This document shows positions 11,765-33,029 of a stretch of DNA of 33,419 nucleotides, piece by piece. The stretch spans positions 83,613,794 through 83,647,212 of the forward strand of contig NC_068988.1 of the NCBI RefSeq assembly GCF_001194135.2, written 5' to 3'. This DNA comes from Octopus bimaculoides. Taxonomy: Eukaryota. The notes under the pieces were generated by a model. It searched no databases. It worked only from the letters and a program-made list of their open reading frames with translations, and had not been told where the DNA came from. Positions within the stretch are counted from its first letter, which is position 1. Each line of letters begins with the position of its first letter. The translations under genes were made by a program, and so were the position numbers.

Positions 11765-12379
11765 AAGAAAAGCAACAAAAGTTCATTAGGTTATAGCAGT
11801 ACGTACGTTTCGTACAAACTTCATTTATTTATGTAGTGAGAACACCACATAAGATATGCAATGAAAATGTACTCCTCAGCTGCATAATGTTGATTAACAG
11901 CCCAGTCAAGATGGTATNNNNNNNNNNNNNNNNNNNNNNNNNNNNNNNNNNNNNNNNNNNNNNNNNNNNNNNNNNNNNNNNNNNNNNNNNNNNNNNNNNN
12001 NNNNNNNNNNNNNNNNNNNNNNNNNNNNNNNNNNNNNNNNNNNNNNNNNNNNNNNNNNNNNNNNNNNNNNNNNNNNNNNNNNNNNNNNNNNNNNNNNNNN
12101 NNNNNNNNNNNNNNNNNNNNNNNNNNNNNNNNNNNNNNNNNNNNNNNNNNNNNNNNNNNNNNNNNNNNNNNNNNNNNNNNNNNNNNNNNNNNNNNNNNNN
12201 NNNNNNNNNNNNNNNNNNNNNNNNNNNNNNNNNNNNNNNNNNNNNNNNNNNNNNNNNNNNNNNNNNNNNNNNNNNNNNNNNNNNNNNNNNNTACACTTTT
12301 CTCATTGTAAGCTTTCCTCCTTCTGTCTATATATTTACCACACTTTCCCTCATTCTCTATAAATGTATATCGCTCACAC

Positions 12380-12416
<37 letters not shown>

Positions 12417-12820
12417 GTTAGAATGTGTGTATGTATGTACGTGTGTGTGTGTGTGTGTGTGTGTTTATAAAACAGTGAGCTTTCTAATACACCATTGAAA
12501 ACAGCTTTGCTGCATTCAGTGAGTTTTTATGATATTTAATAGTACTTAAGTAATTTTCATGCCCAATATGGCTCTCCGCGGCAGTTATCTCGACATTCAC
12601 ATCTGTAAGAGGTTGAATTATGTTGGCACTGGAAGGGTGTCACACAATTCCTTACATCAATGTTTTTTGGGAAAATTAGCAGAACAAGAAAGTATTTTAA
12701 CAAAACAATCTTTTATTTGGTATGTACAAAATGTACAACTCGGGACAATCAGCAAAGTTATAGTTAATCATTCTTATGAAGACGATATCACACCTTGGAA
12801 CATTTAGAAGACAGGTCTGG

Positions 12821-13116
12821 TGTAAAAGGCAGCAAAACTGGAGTTAATAAAACTTTGTGAGGACATCTTTACAGAACTCCGGTAGGAATCAGAGCTGGAC
12901 AAATTCCAAGCTTCCGGGACAGGAGCGTAGGCGAACTCTGAGCTGCTGAAAAAAAAGCACGTCTGCAAGGTTCAGCGGCTGCGTCTAGAGTCAGAGACGC
13001 CAGAGATGCGAGAGAACTTTTTCCCCGCCAGTTTTCTGCGCATGCGCATGAGGGAACTTCCGGCAGGCCTTCTAGAAGATTCCAACCCTGAAGACTCTCA
13101 AGATGACGTCACTACA
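12821..13116 (-). mobile_element. Solo-LTR-like unit (TGTAGTG...TTTTACA on minus), 296 bp
   Basis: TGTA/TACA termini; CRE, ETS and NRF1 motifs near the minus 5' end; no TSD found. Orientation inferred by analogy with neighbouring units. Confidence 0.5.
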
Positions 13117-13466
13117 CATCTCTGACAAATATTGATTTATCTTATAGACCAATGGACAGAATCACCGATGTGGCTTTTTGTGTCAGAAAACAACCATCAA
13201 TGGAAGAGCAAGCCGATTGAGTTTTGCTACAGAAAAATGAAAATGTATTTTCTGACGTAAAATGTCCGTGAAATCAGAGATGCAACTCTATGGGATCGTC
13301 ATTGTAAAGGGGGAAAGAGAAAACGAAAGAAAATTTTACGGAATGTGATACCATTGATGTTTTATTTATTTAATTATATAAATTTGATAGATTTTATTTT
13401 TATTTAATATTATTTGCTTGTTTCATTCAATCATTGTTTAAAATTGCATGTTTCAGTTAGCTGGGG

Positions 13467-13735
13467 AAAGAATGAGGAGAAAAAAAACTACCGTGGAGCG
13501 ACAGCGACCGTTCATGGGCCGGTGTTTCAAGTGTCAGGGACCGTGCATGGCAAGAGACTGCGCAGAGACGAAGCCCGAACTCGTTTGCTACCGGTGCAGG
13601 CAGACTGGGCATATCACTCGAAACTACAACTAGGGAAAAGGCCACGGGGAAGTTGCTCTCTCAAACTTCCCCCGCAAGCAAGTAGAAGTATTCGTGCAGT
13701 CGCTGTCCGTACCTGAAGTCCTGGTTGGGGGAAAG
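13467..13735 (+). pseudogene. Gag zinc-knuckle/protease junction fragment; ~95% identical copy of 20494-20762
   Basis: Translates CFKCQGPCMARDC...CYRCRQTGHITRNYN*GKGHGEV...VPEVLVGGK; 13 differences in 269 bp against copy 2 by manual count. Confidence 0.9.
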
Positions 13736-13889
13736 CAGTTCTTCTTTCATGAGCCGTAATACCGAGTGTTTCATCTTCATCCCTCCTCATGTTACTCTCA
13801 TTTATAGCACACCCCGGCTTTCTCCTCTCCCTCCCCACTCTTTCTCCCATTCTCTCACTGAGTAAACGCATAAGCTCATCTCGGACTAC
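13736..13889 (-). mobile_element. Truncated LTR-like 5' segment abutting the gag fragment in opposite orientation
   Basis: Minus strand starts TGTAGTCCGAGATGAG, then a purine-rich U3 and CTATAAAT (plus 13800-13807); cut at 13736. Confidence 0.45.
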
Positions 13890-13904
13890 AATATCCAGTA
13901 TGTC

Positions 13905-14477
13905 TGTAACGGGTTGTTATGTGGATGATGATGATATTGACTCCGTGAAATAAAGACAGTGGTTGAAGTTACAAACAAATATTTTATTTAACCATTACAT
14001 GTGATCTTTACTTAACACGATGGGTAGATGATAATATCAACAATCGAGAGCAGATCTGTATAAAGAGGAGTGTTGTATTTCAGTGTCTGATACTGTATGG
14101 CTTTAGGTTCTACGCTGCTTGATCTCGTCAATCTAGCAGTAGTAGGGACATTGATAGAGTAATGGCACTGAAGGCGGAAAGCCGAGAGAGTCAGGAAAGT
14201 AAGTGACTTGTTCGTCGTGCGGCACAGCCCTGTTGCTATAATCCCTACTGGTGTGCTTTCTGCTCGTCCACTGAGGTGCCTCTGGTCGTCTCTTTTCACC
14301 AACTCATTTTTCCTTACGGAATTCTAGTATTTATAACTATGCAGACTAGCTAGAGATAGAGATATGTAGAGAAACGACCGTGCGAACCAAAGGAGAATGG
14401 TGACGAATGGAAACAGGCTCCTTTTAACGCGTCGCACGGTCGACACAAAATATGATATATATTATAATACTATAACA
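13905..14477 (-). mobile_element. Solo-LTR-like unit, 573 bp
   Basis: Minus strand TGTTATAG...CCGTTACA; TATA box TTATAAATA (plus 14328-14336); AATAAA (plus tttatt 13983-13988); no TSD (tgtc vs taag). Confidence 0.6.
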
Positions 14478-14692
14478 TAAGAGAACTAGGAAATGCCAGT
14501 AAGGTAAAGATAGAGATGACTCAACCGATAAAGATGTATGACAGTAAGTTTTATTGGTTATCAACTAGAATGTCTGCATGAATGTGAATGCGACATAATA
14601 AAACAATATAAGACAGGCCGTCATGTAAACAAAGCGTGTGTATACAAATATATGTTTGTAAATGCAAGAGGTACAGAGGATAGAAAAGAGTC

Positions 14693-15306
14693 TGTAACAC
14701 GGATAAGAAATACCAGTTCTCAGTTAAGGTACACAGTAGATTTGAAAGTCTGTATATAAGAGGTTGAGGCGTTGAGGCTGAGCTAAGTCACTTGTCGTGC
14801 AGTTGAGGCTTCTATGCCGGACCGAGCTACTTGATACAAGGTTTCTCGCAGGTGTCAAATTCTGGCTGTTATTTCGTGGTAAAACAATTCACACAAACAG
14901 TAGTGTTGAGAGAAGCTGCGGTTGCTGTTGGTAGCTTATGTACGTAGAGATGTCGTGTTGACGACGCTTGTAGTAAACAGTTGAACGATGGTGTTGATGT
15001 CGTCGCTGGAAACTGGCTGGTTGGTGTTACGTGGTCAACGACCAGACCTCAGAAGGTCAGAAGCCGCGACAAAGTGACGCGGATAAAACAGGCTATTTAT
15101 AGGTACAGATAGACTCCAGAAACATTAGAAAAACACTCCCTCACGTGACCTTATTAGATGGCCACGATTGGTCGGTATGCACCCTGGCGCAAATAAAAGT
15201 CAATCAGGGTGATGGACACAGCGGGGGCGAAGGCGGGAAAGAGATAGATGTTACCTGCTACGTTCGCATTTGTAAATAAATAACCGAGAGAGGTGGTTTC
15301 ACTACA
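14693..15306 (-). mobile_element. Solo-LTR-like unit, ~614 bp (left boundary could instead be 14535)
   Basis: Minus strand TGTAGTGAAACC...GTGTTACA; TATA box CCTATAAATAGCC (plus 15091-15103); no TSD. Confidence 0.55.
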
Positions 15307-15460
15307 TAGCGTCGCACCAGTCGGTTTGTCAAAGACAAAGCAGACGAAACAGGAAATAATTGTAGTGAAGAAACTGAAAGAACCTTTGGTCCAATAACTG
15401 GCACTTAGTCACCATTTAAGAGAAGCTGTGTGAACAGAATTACGTCGGCTGTATGAATAG

Positions 15461-15479
15461 AATCACGTCGGGGTCACCA
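15461..15479 (-). promoter_or_regulatory. Primer-binding site complementary to the tRNA-Trp 3' end
   Basis: Minus strand TGGTGACCCCGACGTGATT lies 3 nt after the LTR end CTACA; the plus strand aatcacgtcggggtcacca equals the metazoan tRNA-Trp(CCA) 3' end including CCA. Confidence 0.9.
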
Positions 15480-15482
15480 GTT

Positions 15483-16023
15483 TGTAGAGAAAGTTGTTTG
15501 TCTCTTACAACGCGCCAGCATGTCACATTTTCATTCCTGCACGATCGAGGCTCATAATACCTCATGCACCGGCTGGCAAAATTTCTCCTCAACCATTCCA
15601 GGGCATTTATCATACATTTCTTCGTTTCCTTTCTTCGTTCGCTTCCCTCCCAGGAAGCTTACTGGCGAGGAGAGTGATATAGGAATCTGGCAGGCGTGAA
15701 GTGGATTCGATCCACTATACCCATATTTGAATAGCTAGGCCGAAGCGGTCTCCACCACTTGACCCTTTTCTGACCTCTTCTACTCCATCTAGAATTGTGA
15801 TAAACAAGCTAAATCATTTGCACTCACTGCCCGGCTATATAAACAGGACACTCCAAGAAAACTTCCTCTTTTCTCTTTCTAGTGACCAGTGGTCACTTGA
15901 CGTCTCATGGAGAATGATGCCTGGCTGATCAGCTACAACTTGGCAGAGGGAGAAATAACTTTACTGTCAGCCACTGTCAGGCAACGTCGCCCACTTTATA
16001 ACCCTACCATCTCTCTCTATACA
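15483..16023 (-). mobile_element. 5' LTR of an LTR retrotransposon (tRNA-Trp primed), 541 bp, followed by ~170 bp of leader (15307-15482)
   Basis: Minus strand TGTATAGAGA...TCTCTACA (imperfect terminal inverted repeat), TATA-like at 15835-15843, PBS immediately downstream. Confidence 0.8.
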
Positions 16024-16752
16024 ATTACTACTATAAAAAAGGTACATACAGATACAGGCCTAAATTCTCAACCTTGCATGTTTTATATACTATTACACTG
16101 GCCTACCCGTCGTGGTATGGCAACATAGAATGTAACGGTAAAAATAAATATTTCTTATAAAAATGTTGATCATCGTTCAATCTTACAACCGTTACAGATA
16201 TATTGTTGAGAACAATGGGTAGTTCAATGTAGGTCACTCTTATTTTATTTCAACTTTTCATGACATAGAAGAGGTTAAGAGTAAAACGGAAAATACATAA
16301 ACTGACCTGGCAAAGTCATGTGTTGAACTTATCAACTTCCATTTTTCTGTGAGAAAAATGCTGTTGAAATTTTAGGGGAAATTTGCCGATTCAGGTTCGA
16401 ATCTACTCTATGCCCAAATGAAGTCACTACATGTCCTTCCCTACAAGAAATATTGTAAGAATCTGCTTCAAACAACTCTCTACTGTTTTAAAATATGAAG
16501 TACACCTTCGATAATGTAATTTTTGATACACCATTCACTCACCACCAAAACAAAGACTGACACGCTTTTAAGAATAGGTCTAATACGATCAGGACTGACC
16601 TGGGGCTAAAGAGCAACTAGAATACTAAAAAGCTAATAATTGTCAGCAGTGAAAAAAAAAAAAGTTAATAATTTTCATTACATTAGATAACTTTATGGGA
16701 GTTGTTTTTAACACCTTTTCCGATCACACCTAAATCTTGAGTTTATCATGCG

Positions 16753-17379
16753 TGTAGACTCCATTTCAGCCAATCAGAACTTTTATGTTTTTATGGTCAT
16801 GCGATAAGTTCTAGAACTTTCCTCCAACGATGGCCTTAATTACAGAGGCCTTTAGCGCGAAAAAGTAGAGGGAATTCGAATTTCGTTGAAACGGTCTCAG
16901 GTGAATTTTCTCTCCCATAGCTTTTCGCAGCTTCATACTCAAATCAGCAGGATTCTCCTAATTGCAGTTTTAATAGCTCTGTACCCAACCCGGCGATGGA
17001 TGAAGAATCAACACGACCATACGCAATTACAGTATAGGAAAGTGGGTTATACATCATTAGATGTATACCTGACTTTCCTATATAAAATTAAGAATATAAC
17101 GGAACGCTGAACTCCAGATTATCAACATAACAATTATTTATTTAAGGTGGTTAATATATACATCATTAGCTCTTGTTTGTTGAGACGTCTTCTGTGTGTG
17201 TGAGCATGGTTGTTGGGACGTTGGTATGTAGATGTGAGCGAGCTGTCTAGCGTAAGTTCGAAAGATGGAGAGAGACAGCTAAACACGTCCTTGCTCAATC
17301 GCTGGCCAGCAAGAAAGAGCCAGAATGAAGCGGGAAAGCTTGGTTGTTGAATTCCACGCATGCGCATGGCGTTACTACA
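16753..17379. mobile_element. LTR-like segment bounded by TGTAG...CTACA; orientation ambiguous, possibly two abutting LTR pieces
   Basis: Plus strand has CCAAT (~16770) and ctatataaaat (~17078); minus strand starts TGTAGTAACGCCATGCGCATGCG and has AATAAA (~17135-17143); no TSD. Confidence 0.45.
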
Positions 17380-18251
17380 ACAGCAACATGAAAAAATACG
17401 CCAAACTATCAATTATCTGTCAAGAACTCCGGCCCCTGTAAAACCCAATGTTTATATAAAATTGACATTGACTGTATTATTGCGTGAAGCCTTGTAATAA
17501 CGTAGCAATAAATTGTGTATATAAACTGACACCAAGTCTTTGTCATAACCAACGCTGTGGTGGGCGGGATGAGAGTTCTGACGTCTAAGATAGTCTACTG
17601 AAAATAAAACCACCATTGGTTAAATTTAAAGATTTGATCACCCTTTTCTAGGTGCCCCACCAATGGCTGTTTATTGCCTCCGTTAACCTCTACTTAATTC
17701 GCTAATCTAATCCGTGTATTGTTTGTGCGCCAGTAGAGGCTCGTTCAGCTTCAGTAACTAAATCTGTCTCAGGGTCCTGTCTAAGTCGACAGATCAGATC
17801 ACAAATTGTAGTCGTAAAGCTGACCAAATGAAACTGTGGGCACTATACACGACCTCTGTCTGCTGACGAACAAAATCTAATAATAATAGAACTGTTATAG
17901 TATTGTGTATGGAGTTTTTTGCAATATATACTCTGCAAATTGCAATCGACTGTCTTCTTTTGAGCAATGAATTTCACGCCAAAGTGATGAGTTTTCACAA
18001 AAATTACGTCAATTTGATCGTGCACATACACTGAAAATAAATCCGAAGTCTACATTGGAATTAAATTCCCCTTTGCAGTTAAAAAATAGCTGTAATGCAA
18101 TCTAACTTAATTATATCTCCGATCTTTAAAAGTTCTTGCTTCTGTTTTCTATTGAAGAGGTCAGTTGCATTATCTTGATATATAGCGTTATCATTAAATA
18201 TTTCTGAACGAACATTAATGAGATATTTTCCAGGCTAAATAGGAATTGTGT

Positions 18252-18901
18252 TTTAGGTTGGATTGGTTTGGATTAAAATCACAAAGCAGATTGCTAATGG
18301 CAATTGTAAAACTTGTTTTATCAAAAGAAATCCGATGTCACATTCAACGTCGCCATCTGACATCCATTTCAAGGCGAGGCATGATGAGGCTTGATAAGAT
18401 AGATTACAGGAAAATCAATAACTTTTTCATTTCTTTCCATTGGAACTTTTTGTTTCTTTTCTCATTTTTCTCTTATCCTATTATTAATTCTAACGTTTTT
18501 TTATTTACCTTAACTCTCTGTCCTCTCTTTTTCTTTCTGCCTGTCAGCCAAGCCACATTACGTGTAGGAAANNNNNNNNNNTTTAGGTTGGATTGGTTTG
18601 GATTAAAATCACAAAGCAGATTGCTAATGGCAATTGTAAAACTTGTTTTATCAAAAGAAATCCGATGTCACATTCAACGTCGCCATCTGACATCCATTTC
18701 AAGGCGAGGCATGATGAGGCTTGATAAGATAGATTACAGGAAAATCAATAACTTTTTCATTTCTTTCCATTGGAACTTTTTGTTTCTTTTCTCATTTTTC
18801 TCTTATCCTATTATTAATTCTAACGTTTTTTTATTTACCTTAACTCTCTGTCCTCTCTTTTTCTTTCTGCCTGTCAGCCAAGCCACATTACGTGTAGGAA
18901 A
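18252..18901. other. Identical 320-bp duplication across a 10-N gap; assembly overlap artefact
   Basis: 18252-18571 equals 18582-18901, separated by exactly 10 N. Confidence 0.9.
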
Positions 18902-20720
18902 AAAATTAAAGCATGAAAGAAAAAGATAAAACATACAATAATAAAATTAAACACACGATTAAATAAACATGGAATAAAGAAATTCTGTACAAATAAATTG
19001 CTAGGTGCAGTACAGCTCATGACTTAATGAAACCAGCTCTAACAAGGTTGCTTATAATGTCAGTGGGATGGTGTATTATCGTGGTAAACGGATTATAAAA
19101 ATAAATATCTTGAATTATGAACAAATTGACTTGGTGTTTGTTAATAAAACTAGAAACAAATAACCATATATGTTTGTTTTATAAAAGTGCAATAAACTCT
19201 GCTTTTATCAGCCAATCCGTCTGTCTACCTCTCTATCTATTTGCCTGTCCATCTTTCTGTCTGTCTATCTGCCTATCTGTCTATGTCTGTTTGTCTTTGC
19301 TGCTACTGTTGTTTTCCTTCTTTATTTGATGTGTCTGAAGGAAGGGACAGGGCCCCTGACATTTTGGAGTCTTTCAAGATCCGTTTAAACTGTCCGACAT
19401 CTGCAGGAAAGACACAAGTAGGTGACTCCAATAGACAAAAGAATGTATATATATAATTACATTACTGTTTTAAGAGTGAGTAATGTGGAATTGAAAATAA
19501 ACAGGTAATAACTGCGATTGTTTTCATAAACAAGAATATCAGTGACGAAGCAAATTGGGGATGGTGGTGGAGGGACAGTTGCTCTCCTTCCCACTGTGTG
19601 CAGGTGTGAACAGGCAGAAAATTTCCTCTTGCTTATCAAGTCAGTTAATTAAGGCAGGGTTGGGGAGCAAAATTGTCTCTGCTCTTTCGTTCTGAGAATT
19701 CATGCTATATCATGAAGGAATGTTCTTTATAAAATTATTTTGTTTGAGTAATGGAAGTGGGTAGGAAGATTCTGCAAAGTTGATAGAGATCCTCTTTGAC
19801 AAAAAACAAGTCTTTGCTAAATTTTGAGAGAATGTTTTGGGTGAATGTTTGCAGACTGAAAGGCTTGAAGACATCTTTTGTTTTCCCAATGGCTGTTGGT
19901 ACAAAGCTTGCAATCGAATTGCAAACTTTGTTGTCATCATTTAGCTGCTGATTGAACAGATGTATAATCGAAGGCATTCCAACCATNNNNNNNNNNNNNN
20001 NNNNNNNNNNNNNNNNNNNNNNNNNNNNNNNNNNNNNNNNNNNNNNNNNNNNNNNNNNNNNNNNNNNNNNNNNNNNNNNNNNNNNNNNNNNNNNNNNNNN
20101 NNNNNNNNNNNNNNNNNNNNNNNNNNNNNNNNNNNNNNNNNNNNNNNNNNNNNNNNNNNNNNNNNNNNNNNNNNNNNNNNNNNNNNNNNNNNNNNNNNNN
20201 NNNNNNNNNNNNNNNNNNNNNNNNNNNNNNNNNNNNNNNNNNNNNNNNNNNNNNNNNNNNNNNNNNNNNNNNNNNNNNNNNNNNNNNNNNNNNNNNNNNN
20301 NNNNNNNNNNNNNNNNNNNNNNNNNNNNNNNNNNNNNNNNNNNNNNNNNNNNNNNNNNNNNNNNNNNNNNNNNNNNNNNNNNNNNNNNNNNNNNNNNNNN
20401 NNNNNNNNNNNNNNNNNNNNNNNNNNNNNNNNNNNNNNNNNNNNNNNNNNNNNNNNNNNNNACGGAAGTCTGCGACGTAGTGCGACGACCAGTAAAGAAT
20501 GAGGAGAGAAAAAACTACAGTGGAGCGACAGCGACCGTTCATGGGCCGGTGTTTCAAGTGTCAGGGACCGTACATGGCAAGAGACTGCGCAGAGACGAAG
20601 CCCGAACTCGTTTGCTACCGGTGCAGGCAGACTGGGCATATCAGTCGAAACTGCAACTAAGGAAAGGGCCTCGGAGAAGTTGCTCTCTCAAACTTCCCCC
20701 GCGATCAAGTAGAAGCATTC

Positions 20721-21065
20721 GTGCAGTCGCTGTCCGTACCTGAAGTCCTGGTTGGAGGAAAGGCGTTCAAAGTCCTCGTGGATACGGGCTGTACGTCTCT
20801 CGTGACCCCAAAGGTGACAAACATAGGGAAGAGGATGAGTAGTGTTGGGGCGGTCGACGGCAGCGAAATTGGATGTAAGGGTAGCAGCGAAGTGGGGATA
20901 GCGGTGCAGGGCACAACACTGAGGCTGTGGGCGATTGTGATCGACCATGTAGTAGACGGAATTCCCGTGGTGATGGGCATGGACGCGATCAACCGCCTTA
21001 GAGGTGTCAGTGTCAGTGGAGGCGTGGTTTGTTTCGTTTGGTGGTGCAGAGGCGTCATTCGCTGA
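20721..21065 (+). pseudogene. Retrotransposon aspartic protease
   Basis: VPEVLVGGKAFKVLVDTGCT...VVMGMDAINRL (DTG active site and C-terminal GxD motif). Confidence 0.85.
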
Positions 21066-21149
21066 GTCTGTAACATGAGAGTGGACAGAGCTCTATGGGG
21101 GGGTTGTATTGCTTACACCATTAAGGACAAGGATTTTCGGGCTGTGGAA

Positions 21150-22420
21150 GTAGAGTGACGCCGAAGAAAAGGCTGAACTGCTACCAGCATACCTTGAAAG
21201 GACGTGCCAGAAGTGAGTTAGAAGGAGAGGTAGATTAAGGAGGGTGCCCTTATCCCGTGGAAGATGATGAGCGGAGTGCTACCACCAATGACAGTGGTAC
21301 AGACAATAAAGGGCAAAATCAGGCCGATACTGGACTTTCAAAGATGAATGGCCATGTATCGTACCACACGGGCAGCAAGATAACTGACGTCTGTGGCGAG
21401 ACACTGTGCTAATGAAGACAGATAATGAGGGCAACGACGATTGTCGACTTAAAGTCGGCATATCTGCAGCTCCATGTGAGTGAGAAATTGTGGCAGTATC
21501 AGCTGGTTCAATATACGGTCCAGACATTCTGTTTGACTAGGCTGGGTTTTGGGCTAAAGATCATAGCAACAGTGCTCAAATCTATCCTGGGAAAGGTGGA
21601 CAACATAAAAAAGGCCACCAATTCCTATACAGACATCTTGGTAGACGAGACTGTAGTGTCTGCTGCAGAGGTCGTAAGTCAACTAAAGTTCGGGCTGACT
21701 GCGAAGCCACCGGAGCCAATGGTTGAAGGAGCTGCACTGGGGCTCAAGCTTCAAGAAGACAAAACAGGTGTTTTAGTGTTTTGGAGGGAGAATGAGATCC
21801 CAGAACTTGGTTGCAGCATCAACAAGTGAGAACTATTCTCGATGTGTGGGAGACTAGTGGGTCACCATCCAATCGCGGGGTGGCTTCGAACAGCGTGCAG
21901 CTATATCAAGAAACAACCAGATAGAGCAAAATGGAGAGACAAAGTGAGAGAGGGGACAGTGGCGATGATGCAGGAGATCCTATAGAAGGCAAGAGCAGAA
22001 GACCCACTAAGTGGAAACTGGAACGTGCCCAAATTGGAGAATGGTATCGTATTGTGCGATGCTAGCAGCGTAGCAATAGGGGTTATTCTGGAAACTGGAA
22101 GCGTTGAAGTGGAGGATGCAGCCTGGCTTCAAAAAGCAGATGATTACAAACACATCAACGTGTGGACGCAGTACTGAATGGGGTGAATCTGGCCCTTAAA
22201 TGGGCCGATTCGGCTACTGTGCTTGGCTGGGTAGGATCAGTTACCACCATTGAAAAGAGGGTTCAAACCAAAGGGGATGCAGAGATGTTATGAAAGTGCT
22301 GCCTAGGGGCTCTGGGAGAACTAGCTGCCGAATTTGGTTTGAAGCTGAACATGGTCTTTGTGCCTTCAGAAAGATACAAGGCAAACGTTTTAACCAGGGT
22401 GAAAAAGGTCTGGTCGGTGG
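21150..22420 (+). pseudogene. Reverse transcriptase plus RNase H, frameshifted
   Basis: KGKIRPILDF, VDLKSAYLQLHV, CLTRLGFGL, eroded YxDD (NSYTDILV), CDASSVAIGVILE (~22055), DSATVLGWV, KANVLTRV. Confidence 0.8.
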
Positions 22421-22479
22421 AGCCAGAAGATTCGAAGCAGGGATTCGAAGCAGTGTGTCGGCTAAGTGACTGGAACTAA

Positions 22480-22930
22480 GGAGACTGCATGCCATGCATC
22501 ATATGAGCATGGGGAGAACCCTGTATCTTTCCAGGAAGCTTGACTTCAACGTTACTAGACAGAGTATTCAAAAGGAGGTCGGGAACTGTGATAGGTGTCA
22601 ATCCATCGACCTTGCTTCGGGTGTGCATGAGCAGGGAAACATCTCGGTGGAGCACAACTGGAGACAATTGGCAGTGGATGTGACACACTACTAGCAAGGA
22701 ATGTATCTTTTGATGGTCAACTGTGGACTGGATCAGATGGCCATATGGAGGGAAATGAAGACGGGTACTGCAGACAAGATTGCACGTATCCTGAATGAGA
22801 TACGTTTTGGATGTTTGCAGAATTGTTACATTGTTGGACAACAAAGATGGAGGAGGGGAAGAGAATGAGGCTCCCTTCCTGCGGAGAACACAGTGTGCAA
22901 GGCGTCCAAATGGGTGAATGGCAGACTTCA
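22480..22930 (+). pseudogene. Integrase with HHCC finger and first catalytic Asp; catalytic core deleted near 22800
   Basis: MHHMSMGRTLYL...CDRCQSID...WRQLAVDVTHY; the sequence passes from LNEI to terminal-looking sequence with no recognisable DNG/E motifs. Confidence 0.7.
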
Positions 22931-23497
22931 ACATGGAGTGAAGTGAAAAGGTGATCTTTGAGATTAAGGGTCCGTGTGAAGATGAGATGAACTGGAAGGA
23001 AAGGGCTGAGACGTCAACGGCTGAGGGGCCTCACCGGAACAGGAAGGGGGAGAGAGGAAGTGGGGGAAGCAAGACCAGCGTCGTCCTTTTTCAGCCTGGG
23101 GCAGTGGTGGTGAACATGGATTGGTAGTAGTAGCTGCTATCATAAGGTGAGACAGGTAGGGTACATGTTTGGACTTAACACAGTTGGACAGGCAACAACG
23201 AGAGGTAGGTGAACCATATTATATTCCCTGCATTACAGTTCTCTCATACCACACATGTGGTAGGCAGTATTCTTTATTGATTGTCCTGCAATAAGTGACT
23301 CACTTGGAGATACAAGGTGCATGGGCTTTGGTTGTGTGAAGGGATCTAATGAGACATACCTAGAAGGATGGTTTTGGTCATTCATTTAGCTGTCTTAGAA
23401 GGGTCACAGGTAAAACAATTTAGTAGTTGGTAAAGAGCTTACAGATCTCAGATAAGTTAACTGACTTTCAGTAATCACAAAGTCCAAGGAACAGTGG

Positions 23498-23752
23498 ATG
23501 TTGGGTGGAGGGAAACTGTGAAATATATTACACTGATGAGGTAAGAATTGGAGACTGTAACGGCTGGGTTTGGATGTAAGAAAGGGATTAAGGGTGTTTG
23601 GAGTGTGGTCAAAGTTGCAGATAGGAGAGAATTCTTAACTGGTGCAAAAATAATTCAGGATGGCAGCAATTTTTTGGTTAAATTATCATGATAATGAAAG
23701 TGCTTGTTTGGCAATTTCTGTACAAAATTTTTATTTCTTTAACTTTTTCAAC
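23498..23752. repeat. Copy 1 of a ~255-bp direct duplication (copy 2 at 27020-27274), ~96% identical
   Basis: atgttgggtg...tttttcaac; about 9 substitutions by eye. Confidence 0.9.
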
Positions 23753-24138: not shown

Positions 24139-25166
24139 CACACACATAAAAACATACATATATACACAAAAATAAACATCATGCTTACAAAGATATACAT
24201 ACATACATACATACATACACATAATACATACATAAAAACTTCATAAACATAAATGATTCAGGTGAAATAAAAATTTTGTACAGAAATTGCTGAACAAACA
24301 CTTTCATTATGATGCCACTTTAACCAAAAAATTGCCAGGATGGCAAATGACTTGGTCTTTGCCACAGCCATGTCATGTACGGTGAATATGGGAGCCAAGA
24401 GGAGTTGAAGGAGTTGTGTGCATTGAAGACACTGAAGATGATGATTTAAGTTTGGGGCAAGGTGAAATAGCAGCAATACAGGATGAGAAATAACTGAAAA
24501 ATTGCTGGTAGCTGAAGACATTCAGGACAGAAGAGAGACATAGAGTTAGAATAATTGAAGACCCATGCTGTTGATGTTCAAATGAGAGATGTGAATAGTA
24601 CAAAGAGTGGATTCTACATAAATATATACAATAGCTTTCAGAGCAAAGTTGAAATATTAGCATTACGTTCTCCTTTGCTGCTCAGCACATAGGATAATAA
24701 ATTTCTTCCATTGGGCTCACTCAACTGCTATTCTTGCACATGTAATGTTAACAGTCTTCAGGCCATCCTGAAATGTCAGCCACTAGGTGATCTTTGAACT
24801 ACCCTTTTTACATCTATCATCAGGTGGCATCTATGTTATGGCTGTTCACAAGTCCTATTCATCAGCTAGCTGGAGAATGTGGCCAGCCAGTTAGAATAAG
24901 TGCTCTTCTATAATATCATGCAGTCATTGTGACCTTTCTCTTCTCAGCATTAACCACACTCTTCTCAGTTGAAAACCACTTCTTACCCTCACCCATTTAT
25001 TACGCTCAGTAGTGTAATTGCCACGCAATAATCAACACTTGTGTATTCTTGGGTATTCTAACTCTAACTCTCTTTGAATTATATATATATATATAGATGT
25101 GCTGGCCTCCTGATAATTAATCGATATTAATTAATATATGATTAATTACCAGATTTTATAATGATT

Positions 25167-27019: not shown

Positions 27020-27274
27020 ATGTTGGGTGAAAGGAAACTGTGAAATATATTACATTGATGGGGTAAGAATTAGAGATTGTAATGGCTGGGTTTGGATGTA
27101 AGAAAGGGATTAAGGGTGTTTGGAGTGTGGTCAAAGTTGCAGATAGGAGAGAATTCTTAACTGGTGCAAAAATAATTCAGGATGGCAGCAATTTTTTGGT
27201 TAAAGTATCATGATAATGAAAGTGCTTGTTTGGCAATTTCTGTACAAAATTTTTATTTCTTTAATTTTTTCAAC
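27020..27274. repeat. Copy 2 of the ~255-bp direct duplication
   Basis: See 23498-23752. Confidence 0.9.
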
Positions 27275-27659
27275 TGAATTGCTTATATTTATGTATTTTT
27301 TGTATATGCATCATGTGTTTGTGTGTATGTGTGTATATGTGTGTATGTGTGTATGTTCCTTTCTGTGGAAGAGTGTAGGCTTGAAACATTAAAGACTTTT
27401 TCAATTCCTGAGTATTATACTAATACATCTATTTTTCTACACCACGTCTGTTGCATTTTTGTGAATTCTCCCTATATGTATTAAAAAATTCACTTAATCT
27501 ATTTGGCACAGAGTGGATGAAACTATTCAAAGTATGGAATACGCCCATAAGTGTGAAAATATAGTCAGTTCAGTTGAAGGTTCAAATGCGGCTGAGGGAA
27601 TGAAACAAAAAATTGCAGTAAAACAGAGTGGAGCATCTCTATGTAAGCCAAAACAAAAT

Positions 27660-28801
27660 GAAAAATTGCCCAAAATAAAAAGTAAACATTGTTCAAAAGT
27701 AGATTTTCCATGGTAGAGACTACACATCGATTTCGCTGATCCTTTAAATGGTTCTTACTACTTAGTGGTAGTTGATAGTTTCTCGAAATGGCCTGAAAGT
27801 TGCAAGTGTAAAAAACCAACCTTCTCAACTGGGAATTTTTTACACGCATTGTTTTCAAGATTTGGCATTCCAGACAAGATAGTGTCTAACAATGGAACGC
27901 AATTTGTGTCTAATGAATTTTAAAAATTTTAGAAAACGTTCATGGTAAAACGTATAACTACAGCACCATACCATCACAGGACAGGTACAATGCTTTGTTG
28001 ATACCTTCAAAAGAGCCCTTAGAAAATCGAATAAGGAAGTCATGGATGATGTAGCTCTACAACAATTTGTAAGAGTGTACCATGTGACACTAAATCCGAA
28101 TACACTCGCAGGTAGATCACCAGCAGAGCTGATGTTTGCAAGGAAAGTAAAATCAGTTTTTGATAAATTGCTACCTGGCAAGAAAAGAGAAAGAGCCATG
28201 GAAGATATAGCAAGATTCTTTAAAGTTGGTGAAAAGGTGTATATGAGGGCATACAAGAATAGAAGGCAGAGTTGGGAAGATGGCGTAATTTCCAAATGCA
28301 TAGGTAAAATTATGTATTGGGTAATAAGTAAAAAAGGTATACAAAAGAAACACAGGAACCAACTGAAAAAGAGATTTGAGAAAAGCAAACCAAAGAAGTT
28401 GGAGGAACCAATGGAATGGTTGTATGATACGTTCCAAGTACCAATGCCACTGCAGGTGATTGAACCCAGGTGTACAAGTGAAAGGATAAGAAAACATACA
28501 GTAATTCCTGAAAATAAATGCCAAGTGAAAAAAATATTAAACTGTATGAAAAGAAAACTCAAAAAATGGAGGTAGGGTGAATAAAAAAAATCATTGCTAA
28601 ATAAAATGTCACTTCCTAAGAAAAACTTAAAAGAGGAGATGTCGTAGGGAATTAGTAATAATGGTACACCCCCCCCCCCATGTGACAAATGGAATTATCT
28701 AGTCACTATATGTAAAGAGAGTATGTAGTAGGCAGTCAGAGATAGTTGTATCTTTACTGGTTTTACTAAATATACTGTATACTGAAGTGGGCATTTTAAC
28801 A
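27660..28801 (+). mobile_element. 3' end of a Ty3/Gypsy element: decayed integrase, PPT (28629-28639) and 162-bp 3' LTR (28640-28801)
   Basis: KVDFPW*RLHIDFADPLNGSYYLVVVDSFSKWPE; FGIPDKIVSNNGTQF; SPAELMF; FKVGEKVYMR...KKHRNQL; aaaagaggaga|TGTCG...TTAACA. Confidence 0.9.
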
Positions 28802-32180: not shown

Positions 32181-33029
32181 TGAGGGGATACCCAAAACAA
32201 ACTGGGGTTTTGTAGTAATATTTTATTCATTTAGATTTACATGTTTACACTTTTATCGCCTTCAAAGCATTCTCCATTTGAAGCAATGCATCAGTCTTGG
32301 GCATGTTTTCCACTATTTGAAGCAGCCCTGGAACTCTTGTGAAGTGATCCCTTTTAATGCCTGTCATTTTTTCTTCACCTCTTCTACATCTGCAAATTCC
32401 ATAGCACCAGCTTTCATTACCAGTGATGACCTTTGGAAAAAGGTCCAGATTAACTTCCAACTGTTCTTTCAGTTCATGATACGCATTCAGTTGTGACTGC
32501 TTTTGATCTTCTTTGAGCAAGCCAGACATAAGTTTTGCTGCAAATCTTTTCATTTGCAATTCCTTGCTCAAAATTCATTAGCAGGAGCTCCAGGAAACAC
32601 CAGTCATATCAACAAGTTTGTCAACTGTTTGGTGACAATCTTCCAATGTTGATGGTCACCCTGAACGAGGTTGGTCTTCAAGCGACAAGCATGGAAACCA
32701 CTCATAAACTTGTGTTTCACTTATGGCAGCATCTTTGTCAGCTGTTTTGAAGTATGACAACTGTTTCGGCTGCCATTTTCCCCCAGCAGAAAACTGAATT
32801 TCATGGAAGCATGCTGTTCCTTTGTCTCAGCCATCGCAAAAGTCAATGAACAAGGGAGAAGCACTGCAAAACAAAGACACACCAAGTGGCAGTATGAATT
32901 GACCGGACACCACTGGTCAGCAGACTGATACCAGAGGGTTGGATCAAATGCCTTCTAGTAGCAGAAGCCTGAACTACAATGGATTTGTCCCACAGAGAAC
33001 GTTTCCAGTTACTTTTGGGTACCCATTTG
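32181..33029 (-). mobile_element. Mariner (Tc1/mariner) element, internally deleted, with TA TSDs and ~25-bp imperfect TIRs
   Basis: TA|tgaggggatacccaaaacaaactgg ... ccagttacttttgggtacccatttg|TA; transposase remnants LGKMAAETVVIL, TQVYEWF, LEDQPRSG, MKRFAAK, VITGNESWCYG joined to ADVEEVKKK...CIASNGECFEGD. Confidence 0.9.

Follow-up and report, generated by a model that had tools for sequence, protein, structure and literature searches.

Probable deletion-eroded retroelement debris and low-copy non-coding DNA in a 4.6-kb stretch of an Octopus bimaculoides intergenic region

Nested long terminal repeat (LTR) retroelements that have been eroded by deletion are the closest described counterpart of the DNA analyzed here, positions 12821–17379 (4,559 bp) of a 33,419-nucleotide stretch of the Octopus bimaculoides contig NC_068988.1. 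This whole stretch is called the window below; it is a draft scaffold with nine N gaps, and the examined part lies inside a gap-free contig (12292–18571). An earlier note on this DNA had described a stack of about six mutually unrelated and mostly co-oriented LTR-like cassettes without target-site duplications (TSDs), and had proposed a compound element copied as a unit, a recombination-assembled array, or a trap for transposable elements (TEs), with old nested insertions as the mundane alternative. As in deletion-eroded nested LTR remnants, several families lie side by side in non-coding DNA, the TSDs, partner LTRs, and internal regions are gone, and one junction or more falls within an element. 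The present stretch differs from such remnants in that the demonstrated parts are only a single LTR end and a single internal fragment while the rest may not be TE-derived, and in that no high-copy repeats interrupt the 6-kb contig.

Three other described systems resemble parts of the stretch. In avian leukosis/sarcoma-type retroviruses and some LTR retrotransposons, the 5′ LTR is followed by a primer-binding site (PBS) for tRNA-Trp. The same 18-nt sequence occurs here, again 3 nt past a terminal ...ACA, but no gag-pol follows the PBS and there is no 3′ LTR, polypurine tract (PPT), or TSD. Elements that use the same primer tRNA need not be related. In marine invertebrates, LTR retroelements of the DUF7047 type encode a gag zinc knuckle, protease, reverse transcriptase, DUF7047, RNase H, and integrase, and the end of gag together with the start of the protease is found in the window at 13467–13744 and within 20494–23150. 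Unlike the described elements, the window copies are degenerate, one being frameshifted and the other a 278-bp stump, and their own LTRs were not identified. Finally, unistrand (flamenco-like) clusters producing PIWI-interacting RNAs (piRNAs) also consist of fragments of several TE families and hold no genes, but the fragments in the present stretch are not co-oriented where their orientation can be read.

The stretch is probably ordinary deletion-eroded retroelement debris mixed with low-copy non-coding DNA in a repeat-rich intergenic region of the octopus genome. Only three pieces are demonstrably derived from retroelements: the LTR end with its PBS at 15483, the gag-protease (gag-pro) fragment at 13467–13744, and a repeat tail at about 16480–16665. 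Elements of different families would have been inserted at different times, and later deletions, illegitimate recombination, or end-joining would have eliminated partner LTRs and internal regions together with the flanks that the elements originally had. Such removal is proposed as the reason why no TSD and no PPT are left and why one junction lies inside an element. Among the six units of the earlier note, numbered 1 to 6 in the following, the five other than unit 5 could be relics of low-copy LTRs or no more than unique sequence, and there is no sign of the stretch acting as a unit. The earlier interpretation is therefore partly supported, in its mundane branch only: LTR-retroelement material is present, and old insertions with eroded flanks are the reading favored by the evidence. 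As it stands, the stretch is routine TE-derived and low-copy cephalopod intergenic DNA of an already known kind, and it matters little.

The LTR end at 15483 was recognized from its PBS. On the minus strand, positions 15462–15479 read TGGTGACCCCGACGTGAT, which matches the complement of the tRNA-Trp 3′ end at 18 of 18 positions (19 nt when 15461 is included). This sequence has been listed as a tRNA-Trp complement (PMC4635179) and equals the reverse complement of human tRNA-Trp sequence (bioRxiv 10.1101/400127). Even with up to three mismatches allowed, no other match exists in the window (chance expectation, 0.04), and the single PBS reported in the earlier note was thus found again. The minus strand reads ...CTCTACA, AAC, and then the PBS, the LTR end appearing as TGTAGAG on the plus strand. 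The presence of an exact tRNA-Trp PBS at a distance of 3 nt led us to conclude that the LTR of a minus-strand element truly ends at 15483, and unit 5 (15483–16023, minus strand) is accordingly assigned as the 5′ LTR of an LTR retrotransposon. Whereas the end at 15483 is secure through the PBS, that at 16023 is provisional. Unit 5 displays an imperfect terminal inverted repeat (TGTATAGAGAGAG / TGTAGAGAAAG), and among the 26 ACA sites lying 200–1500 bp away, 16023 ranks second for the terminal inverted-repeat match, with 16265 scoring slightly higher. No second, directly repeated copy of the unit 5 LTR was found in the window, indicating that the PBS-bearing element is truncated. Judging from its position after the PBS, the segment 15307–15461 (minus strand) is presumed to be a remnant of the leader of this element; its minus-strand frames have no homologues, and no gag follows the PBS. 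An exact-pattern scan with the LTR/PBS junction gave no matches in the JGI metagenomes and IMG/VR.

The second demonstrable piece, at 13467–13744 on the plus strand, was identified by homology as an internal fragment of a DUF7047-type LTR retroelement. It encodes the zinc knuckles (zf-CCHC, PF00098), the stop of gag, and the N-terminal residues of the protease, and over its 278 bp it displays 95% DNA identity to positions 20494–20771 of the window. The latter positions belong to a degenerate, frameshifted DUF7047-type LTR retroelement extending from 20494 to about 23150 on the plus strand, with a gag zinc knuckle, aspartyl protease, reverse transcriptase, RNase H, and integrase. Because this copy continues into the protease, reverse transcriptase, and integrase, it serves as the reference for the shorter fragment. 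Its homologues include Octopus and Argonauta proteins, and its relatives carry DUF7047. On the left side, the knuckles of the relatives are preceded by some 200 aa of capsid-like gag, whereas positions 13320–13460 of the present stretch are non-coding with a GC content of 15–20%. On the right side, the homology of the fragment ends inside the protease, at VLVGGK|. The comparison with the reference copy thus indicates that the fragment is truncated on both sides. As the cut lies inside a coding region, the junction 13744/13745 cannot be a product of integrase, and the statement of the earlier note that simple independent insertion does not explain the stretch holds for this reason. Two open reading frames of the window, one of which runs across the 13735/6 junction, were looked up as exact proteins, and none was on record.

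For comparison, nine O. bimaculoides loci (GCA_001194135.2; 174 kb of non-N sequence) were chosen around TE-derived proteins related to those of the window, the best named relatives of which are from Octopus bimaculoides, O. sinensis, and Argonauta hians. These loci contain N gaps of variable length, as the window does. This sample is a tiny fraction of the genome and far too small to exclude further copies of any sequence. One of its loci, L001, exhibits 69% identity to the element 20494–23150 over 1.8 kb. The DUF7047-type element of L001 has an LTR pair (8172–8443 and 11803–12074) of 272 bp each and 98% mutual identity. This LTR begins with TGTGGTATGACGTCAG and ends with ...ACACCACAA, and its 5′ copy is followed by GCTATTTCGGCCCCACG, which is unlike a standard PBS beginning with TGG.

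The double truncation of a fragment that is only 5% diverged, together with an LTR followed by an exact PBS and the absence of TSDs, would also be expected if retroelement complementary DNA (cDNA) fragments had been captured during the repair of a chromosome break, with the LTR and PBS resembling plus-strand strong-stop DNA. We regard this explanation as very improbable. The approximately 155 nt after the PBS could be a genuine leader, there is no reference copy of the PBS-bearing element that shows the homology stopping at the PBS, and ordinary deletion accounts for the same facts.

The third piece, at about 16480–16665 on the plus strand, is an old tail fragment of a dispersed repeat resembling a short or long interspersed nuclear element (SINE or LINE), with an A-run at 16650–16663. 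It shows weak matches (about 65–69%) to four of the O. bimaculoides loci, with a core common to L003, L005, and L006.

The units of the earlier note had been delimited by TGT and ACA motifs. Their TGT starts at 12821, 13905, 14693, 15483, and 16753 and their ACA ends at 13116, 14477, 15306, 16023, and 17379 had been placed correctly; the ACA of the second unit ends at 13890, not at 13889. Bounding by TGT...ACA is at chance level and uninformative here. Within the 4,559 bp there are 98 TGT and 91 ACA trinucleotides. TGTA...TACA pairs spaced 150–650 bp apart number 83; seven further 4.6-kb segments taken from the window have 87–166 such pairs, and shuffled sequences have 56 ± 17. The ACTACA end mostly used in the earlier note is mildly enriched, 6 of the 17 occurrences in the window falling in the region. 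Since five units are defined only by motifs occurring at chance frequency, they are not established as LTRs, and the claim of six LTR cassettes cannot be upheld: unit 5 alone has independent evidence, its PBS, and its far end is ambiguous. In general, LTRs in AT-rich sequence cannot be delimited by their TG...CA ends without further evidence. The dissimilarity of the units was reproduced, with no pair exceeding a local-alignment z-score of 3. Regarding the reported absence of a PPT, purine-rich runs do adjoin 16431 and 14693, but they are uninformative. Such runs cover 0.5–2% of all positions, and PPT-like runs were rejected as LTR evidence on account of this background frequency. The observed/expected ratio of CpG was likewise dismissed as a signal of age or of a promoter, because it is not distinctive.

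The absence of TSDs was confirmed: none of the units lies between duplications of 4–6 bp, even when a displacement of up to 12 bp was allowed at the boundaries, a test in which 3.3% of random pseudo-units score. The observations of the earlier note are thus partly confirmed, the coordinates, the lack of TSDs, the dissimilarity of the units, and the single PBS being right and the cassette pattern being at chance level. When all combinations of left and right boundaries (28 pairs) were examined, the only TSD-like match was TGTC on both sides of a 2.5-kb block, TGTAACGG...CACTACA (13905–16431); the match becomes ATGTC if the block is taken to end at 16430. For 28 pairs, chance alone would give about 0.1 matches of this kind. 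The block was rejected as an LTR element with the TSD TGTC, because its ends have no direct LTR-like similarity, and the match was judged to be due to chance.

This block and the lack of individual TSDs are what could be cited for the idea that the units make up one compound element, or an array assembled by recombination, and are copied together. If junctions of this kind recurred, they would represent a new kind of composite mobile unit. We consider the idea highly unlikely in view of the chance expectation and the dissimilar block ends, and also because a doubly truncated coding fragment and oppositely oriented pieces lie inside. Neither a unit nor a junction recurred in the window or in the 174-kb sample, although a sample this small makes the negative result weak evidence.

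A further explanation is that all six units, or seven with the candidate described next, are true LTRs, either solo or truncated, that belong to different low-copy families, were nested over time, and have lost their flanks by erosion. An extra LTR-like candidate that is not in the earlier list lies at 16131–16431. Its minus-strand start, TGTAGTGACTTCAT, matches the start of unit 1, TGTAGTGACGTCAT, at 13 of 14 positions, and similar minus-strand starts are found at 13116, 16431, and 17379, the last being that of unit 6 (TGTAGTAACGCCATGCGCATGCG). The sequence AGGGAAGGACA occurs just outside the candidate, which is statistically not beyond chance. In addition, a rare CpG-rich 12-mer, CGCATGCGCATG (an NRF1-like palindrome), is present at 13038–13050 in unit 1 and at 17356–17368 in unit 6, in both cases within about 70 nt of the ACTACA end. 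The common start speaks for genuine LTRs, as do the real LTR end of unit 5 and the structure of unit 2, which has a TGTAGT start, a TATAAAT at +85, and a cut at the rearrangement junction. The LTR of the DUF7047-type element of L001 begins with TGTGGTATGACGTCAG, and its length of 272 bp is near that of unit 1; the region is also non-coding and low-copy, as expected of small-family LTRs. We nevertheless consider this explanation unlikely. The motifs used for the boundaries are no denser than chance would produce, no unit has a TSD, the PPT-like runs are at chance level, and there is no significant similarity to the L001 LTR or among the units. Triples of TGTAGTGACGTCAT-like starts are expected by chance after post-hoc selection, and the hints of relatedness do not survive correction. 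Moreover, an inverted similarity of 54 nt (74%, E = 2e-4) between 13974–14027 and 16103–16156 runs across 16131, the supposed left end of the extra candidate. Assignment of units 1 and 6 and of 16131–16431 as DUF7047-family LTRs, on the basis of the start resembling a cAMP response element (CRE) that they share with the L001 LTR, was rejected with alignment z-scores of at most 2.2.

The orientation of the pieces bears on the proposal that the stretch is a piRNA-producing TE trap, in which a long precursor transcript containing captured TE fragments gives rise to silencing small RNAs. In molluscs, piRNA clusters with many TE fragments have been reported (PMC6128900), which counts in favor of the proposal, as does the TE-rich neighborhood with its fragments of several families. 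A piRNA source would be of interest, since cephalopod piRNA clusters are poorly described. The co-orientation claimed in the earlier note was not borne out: the three pieces whose strand can be read are mixed within 4.6 kb (the LTR and PBS at 15483, minus; the gag-pro fragment, plus; the repeat tail, plus), and the fragments are mixed in the window as well. Nor do promoter motifs prefer the minus strand, as had been stated, TATA-like motifs numbering 9 on the plus strand and 8 on the minus strand. With this lack of strand asymmetry, with no promoter seen, and with a low measurable TE density in the stretch itself, we regard a piRNA source as quite improbable.

Interspersed repeats with 65–94% identity are common to the window and the O. 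bimaculoides loci, and approximately 29% of the window outside 12500–18571 matches interspersed repeats of the 174-kb sample (E < 1e-5). In contrast, 12500–18571 itself gave zero matches to the sample at the same threshold. This part is low-copy or unique, and small LTR families and plain unique DNA fit equally well.

Several points weigh against the reading of the stretch as ordinary debris. The freedom of 12500–18571 from repeats is unusual for an octopus genome and is unexplained. The rearrangement that left the gag-pro fragment cut on both sides is not very old, given a divergence of only 5% from the element at 20494. Some or all of the units could be genuine LTRs, and the shared TGTAGTGACGTCAT-like starts, together with CGCATGCGCATG in units 1 and 6, hint at related LTR starts. 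Because of the repeat-free 6-kb contig and the little-diverged but doubly cut fragment, we leave a small probability that the stretch is instead a low-copy compound block (e.g., 13905–16431) copied as a unit, or a scar of cDNA ligation at a chromosome break. Either would explain why unrelated pieces that lack TSDs and are truncated at their ends are adjacent to one another while one of them is 95% identical to its relative. Eroded retroelement debris in low-copy DNA is still the explanation that we prefer.

Searches for coding and RNA genes are consistent with non-coding DNA. A six-frame concatenate of all open segments of at least 36 aa from 12780–17480 (3,614 aa) gave no matches among 5.8 billion proteins. 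The lack of coding homology in any frame outside the gag piece argues against an annotated exon of at least 36 aa in this stretch. In Rfam, the only matches were sub-threshold microsatellite "microRNA" matches, all of which lie outside the region, and a tRNA scan found none.

Individual features of the unverified units, for which no strand was assigned, are as follows. Unit 1 (12821–13116) is a GC-richer segment with the CRE-like TGACGTCA, GCGCATGCGC, and CCGGAAG motifs. Its combination of TGACGTCA with two CCGGAAG-type motifs gives it the look of a housekeeping promoter. A host promoter with NRF1-, CRE-, and ETS-like motifs was considered and is mentioned only as a remark, there being no exon or homologue nearby. 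No TATA motif, TSD, PBS, or protein homology was found for this unit, and no copy of it in the window or the 174-kb sample. Unit 2, an LTR-like piece at 13745–13890, adjoins the gag-pro fragment; its minus strand begins with TGTAGTCCGAG and contains the TATAAAT mentioned above. No TSD was found for units 2, 4, and 6, and no copy of any of the three in the window or the sample. Unit 3 (13905–14477) is marked by its boundary motifs and by one arm of the 54-nt inverted similarity. For its 103-aa open frame, the longest one, a phmmer search of 1.84 billion representatives gave no true homologue, the sole match being an artefact in which six identical weak repeats were summed. Unit 4 (14693–15306) has TATA-like motifs on both strands and, 2 nt to its left, the purine run AGAGGATAGAAAAGAG, a kind of run that is at chance level. 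Unit 6 (16753–17379) contains a near-perfect 52-nt hairpin at 17032–17083 with 23-nt arms and a 4-nt loop. The minimum free energy of the hairpin is −28.5 kcal/mol, compared with −9.4 kcal/mol in shuffles (z = −7.6); a small palindromic insertion is one possible origin, a microRNA-like fold another.

The surroundings contain further repeats and element remnants, including several SINE-like families. A high-copy SINE-like repeat at 4602–4896 has 11 overlapping matches across the nine O. bimaculoides loci (67–85% identity). A Gypsy-type integrase remnant is located at about 27500–28600 (27498–28572) on the plus strand; its C-terminal segment is open over 205 aa, and it shares 54–74% identity with O. 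bimaculoides and O. sinensis proteins that carry the annotation "K02A2.6-like". By eye, frames at 5300–6900 and 32245–32571, both on the minus strand, resemble a non-LTR (RTE/CR1-like) reverse transcriptase and a mariner-type transposase, and Pfam gave no match for the two open reading frames tested. Two 320-bp copies at 18252–18571 and 18582–18901 are 100% identical and are separated by a 10-N gap; this pair is almost certainly a duplication artefact of gap closing or scaffolding. A 255-bp direct repeat with 96.5% identity is present at 23498–23752 and 27020–27274, with a partial inverted copy at 24264–24335, and represents a dispersed family and not the LTR pair of a recognizable element. 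Another direct repeat of about 255 bp, with 93% identity between 431–683 and 1150–1405, lies beside microsatellite-rich sequence.

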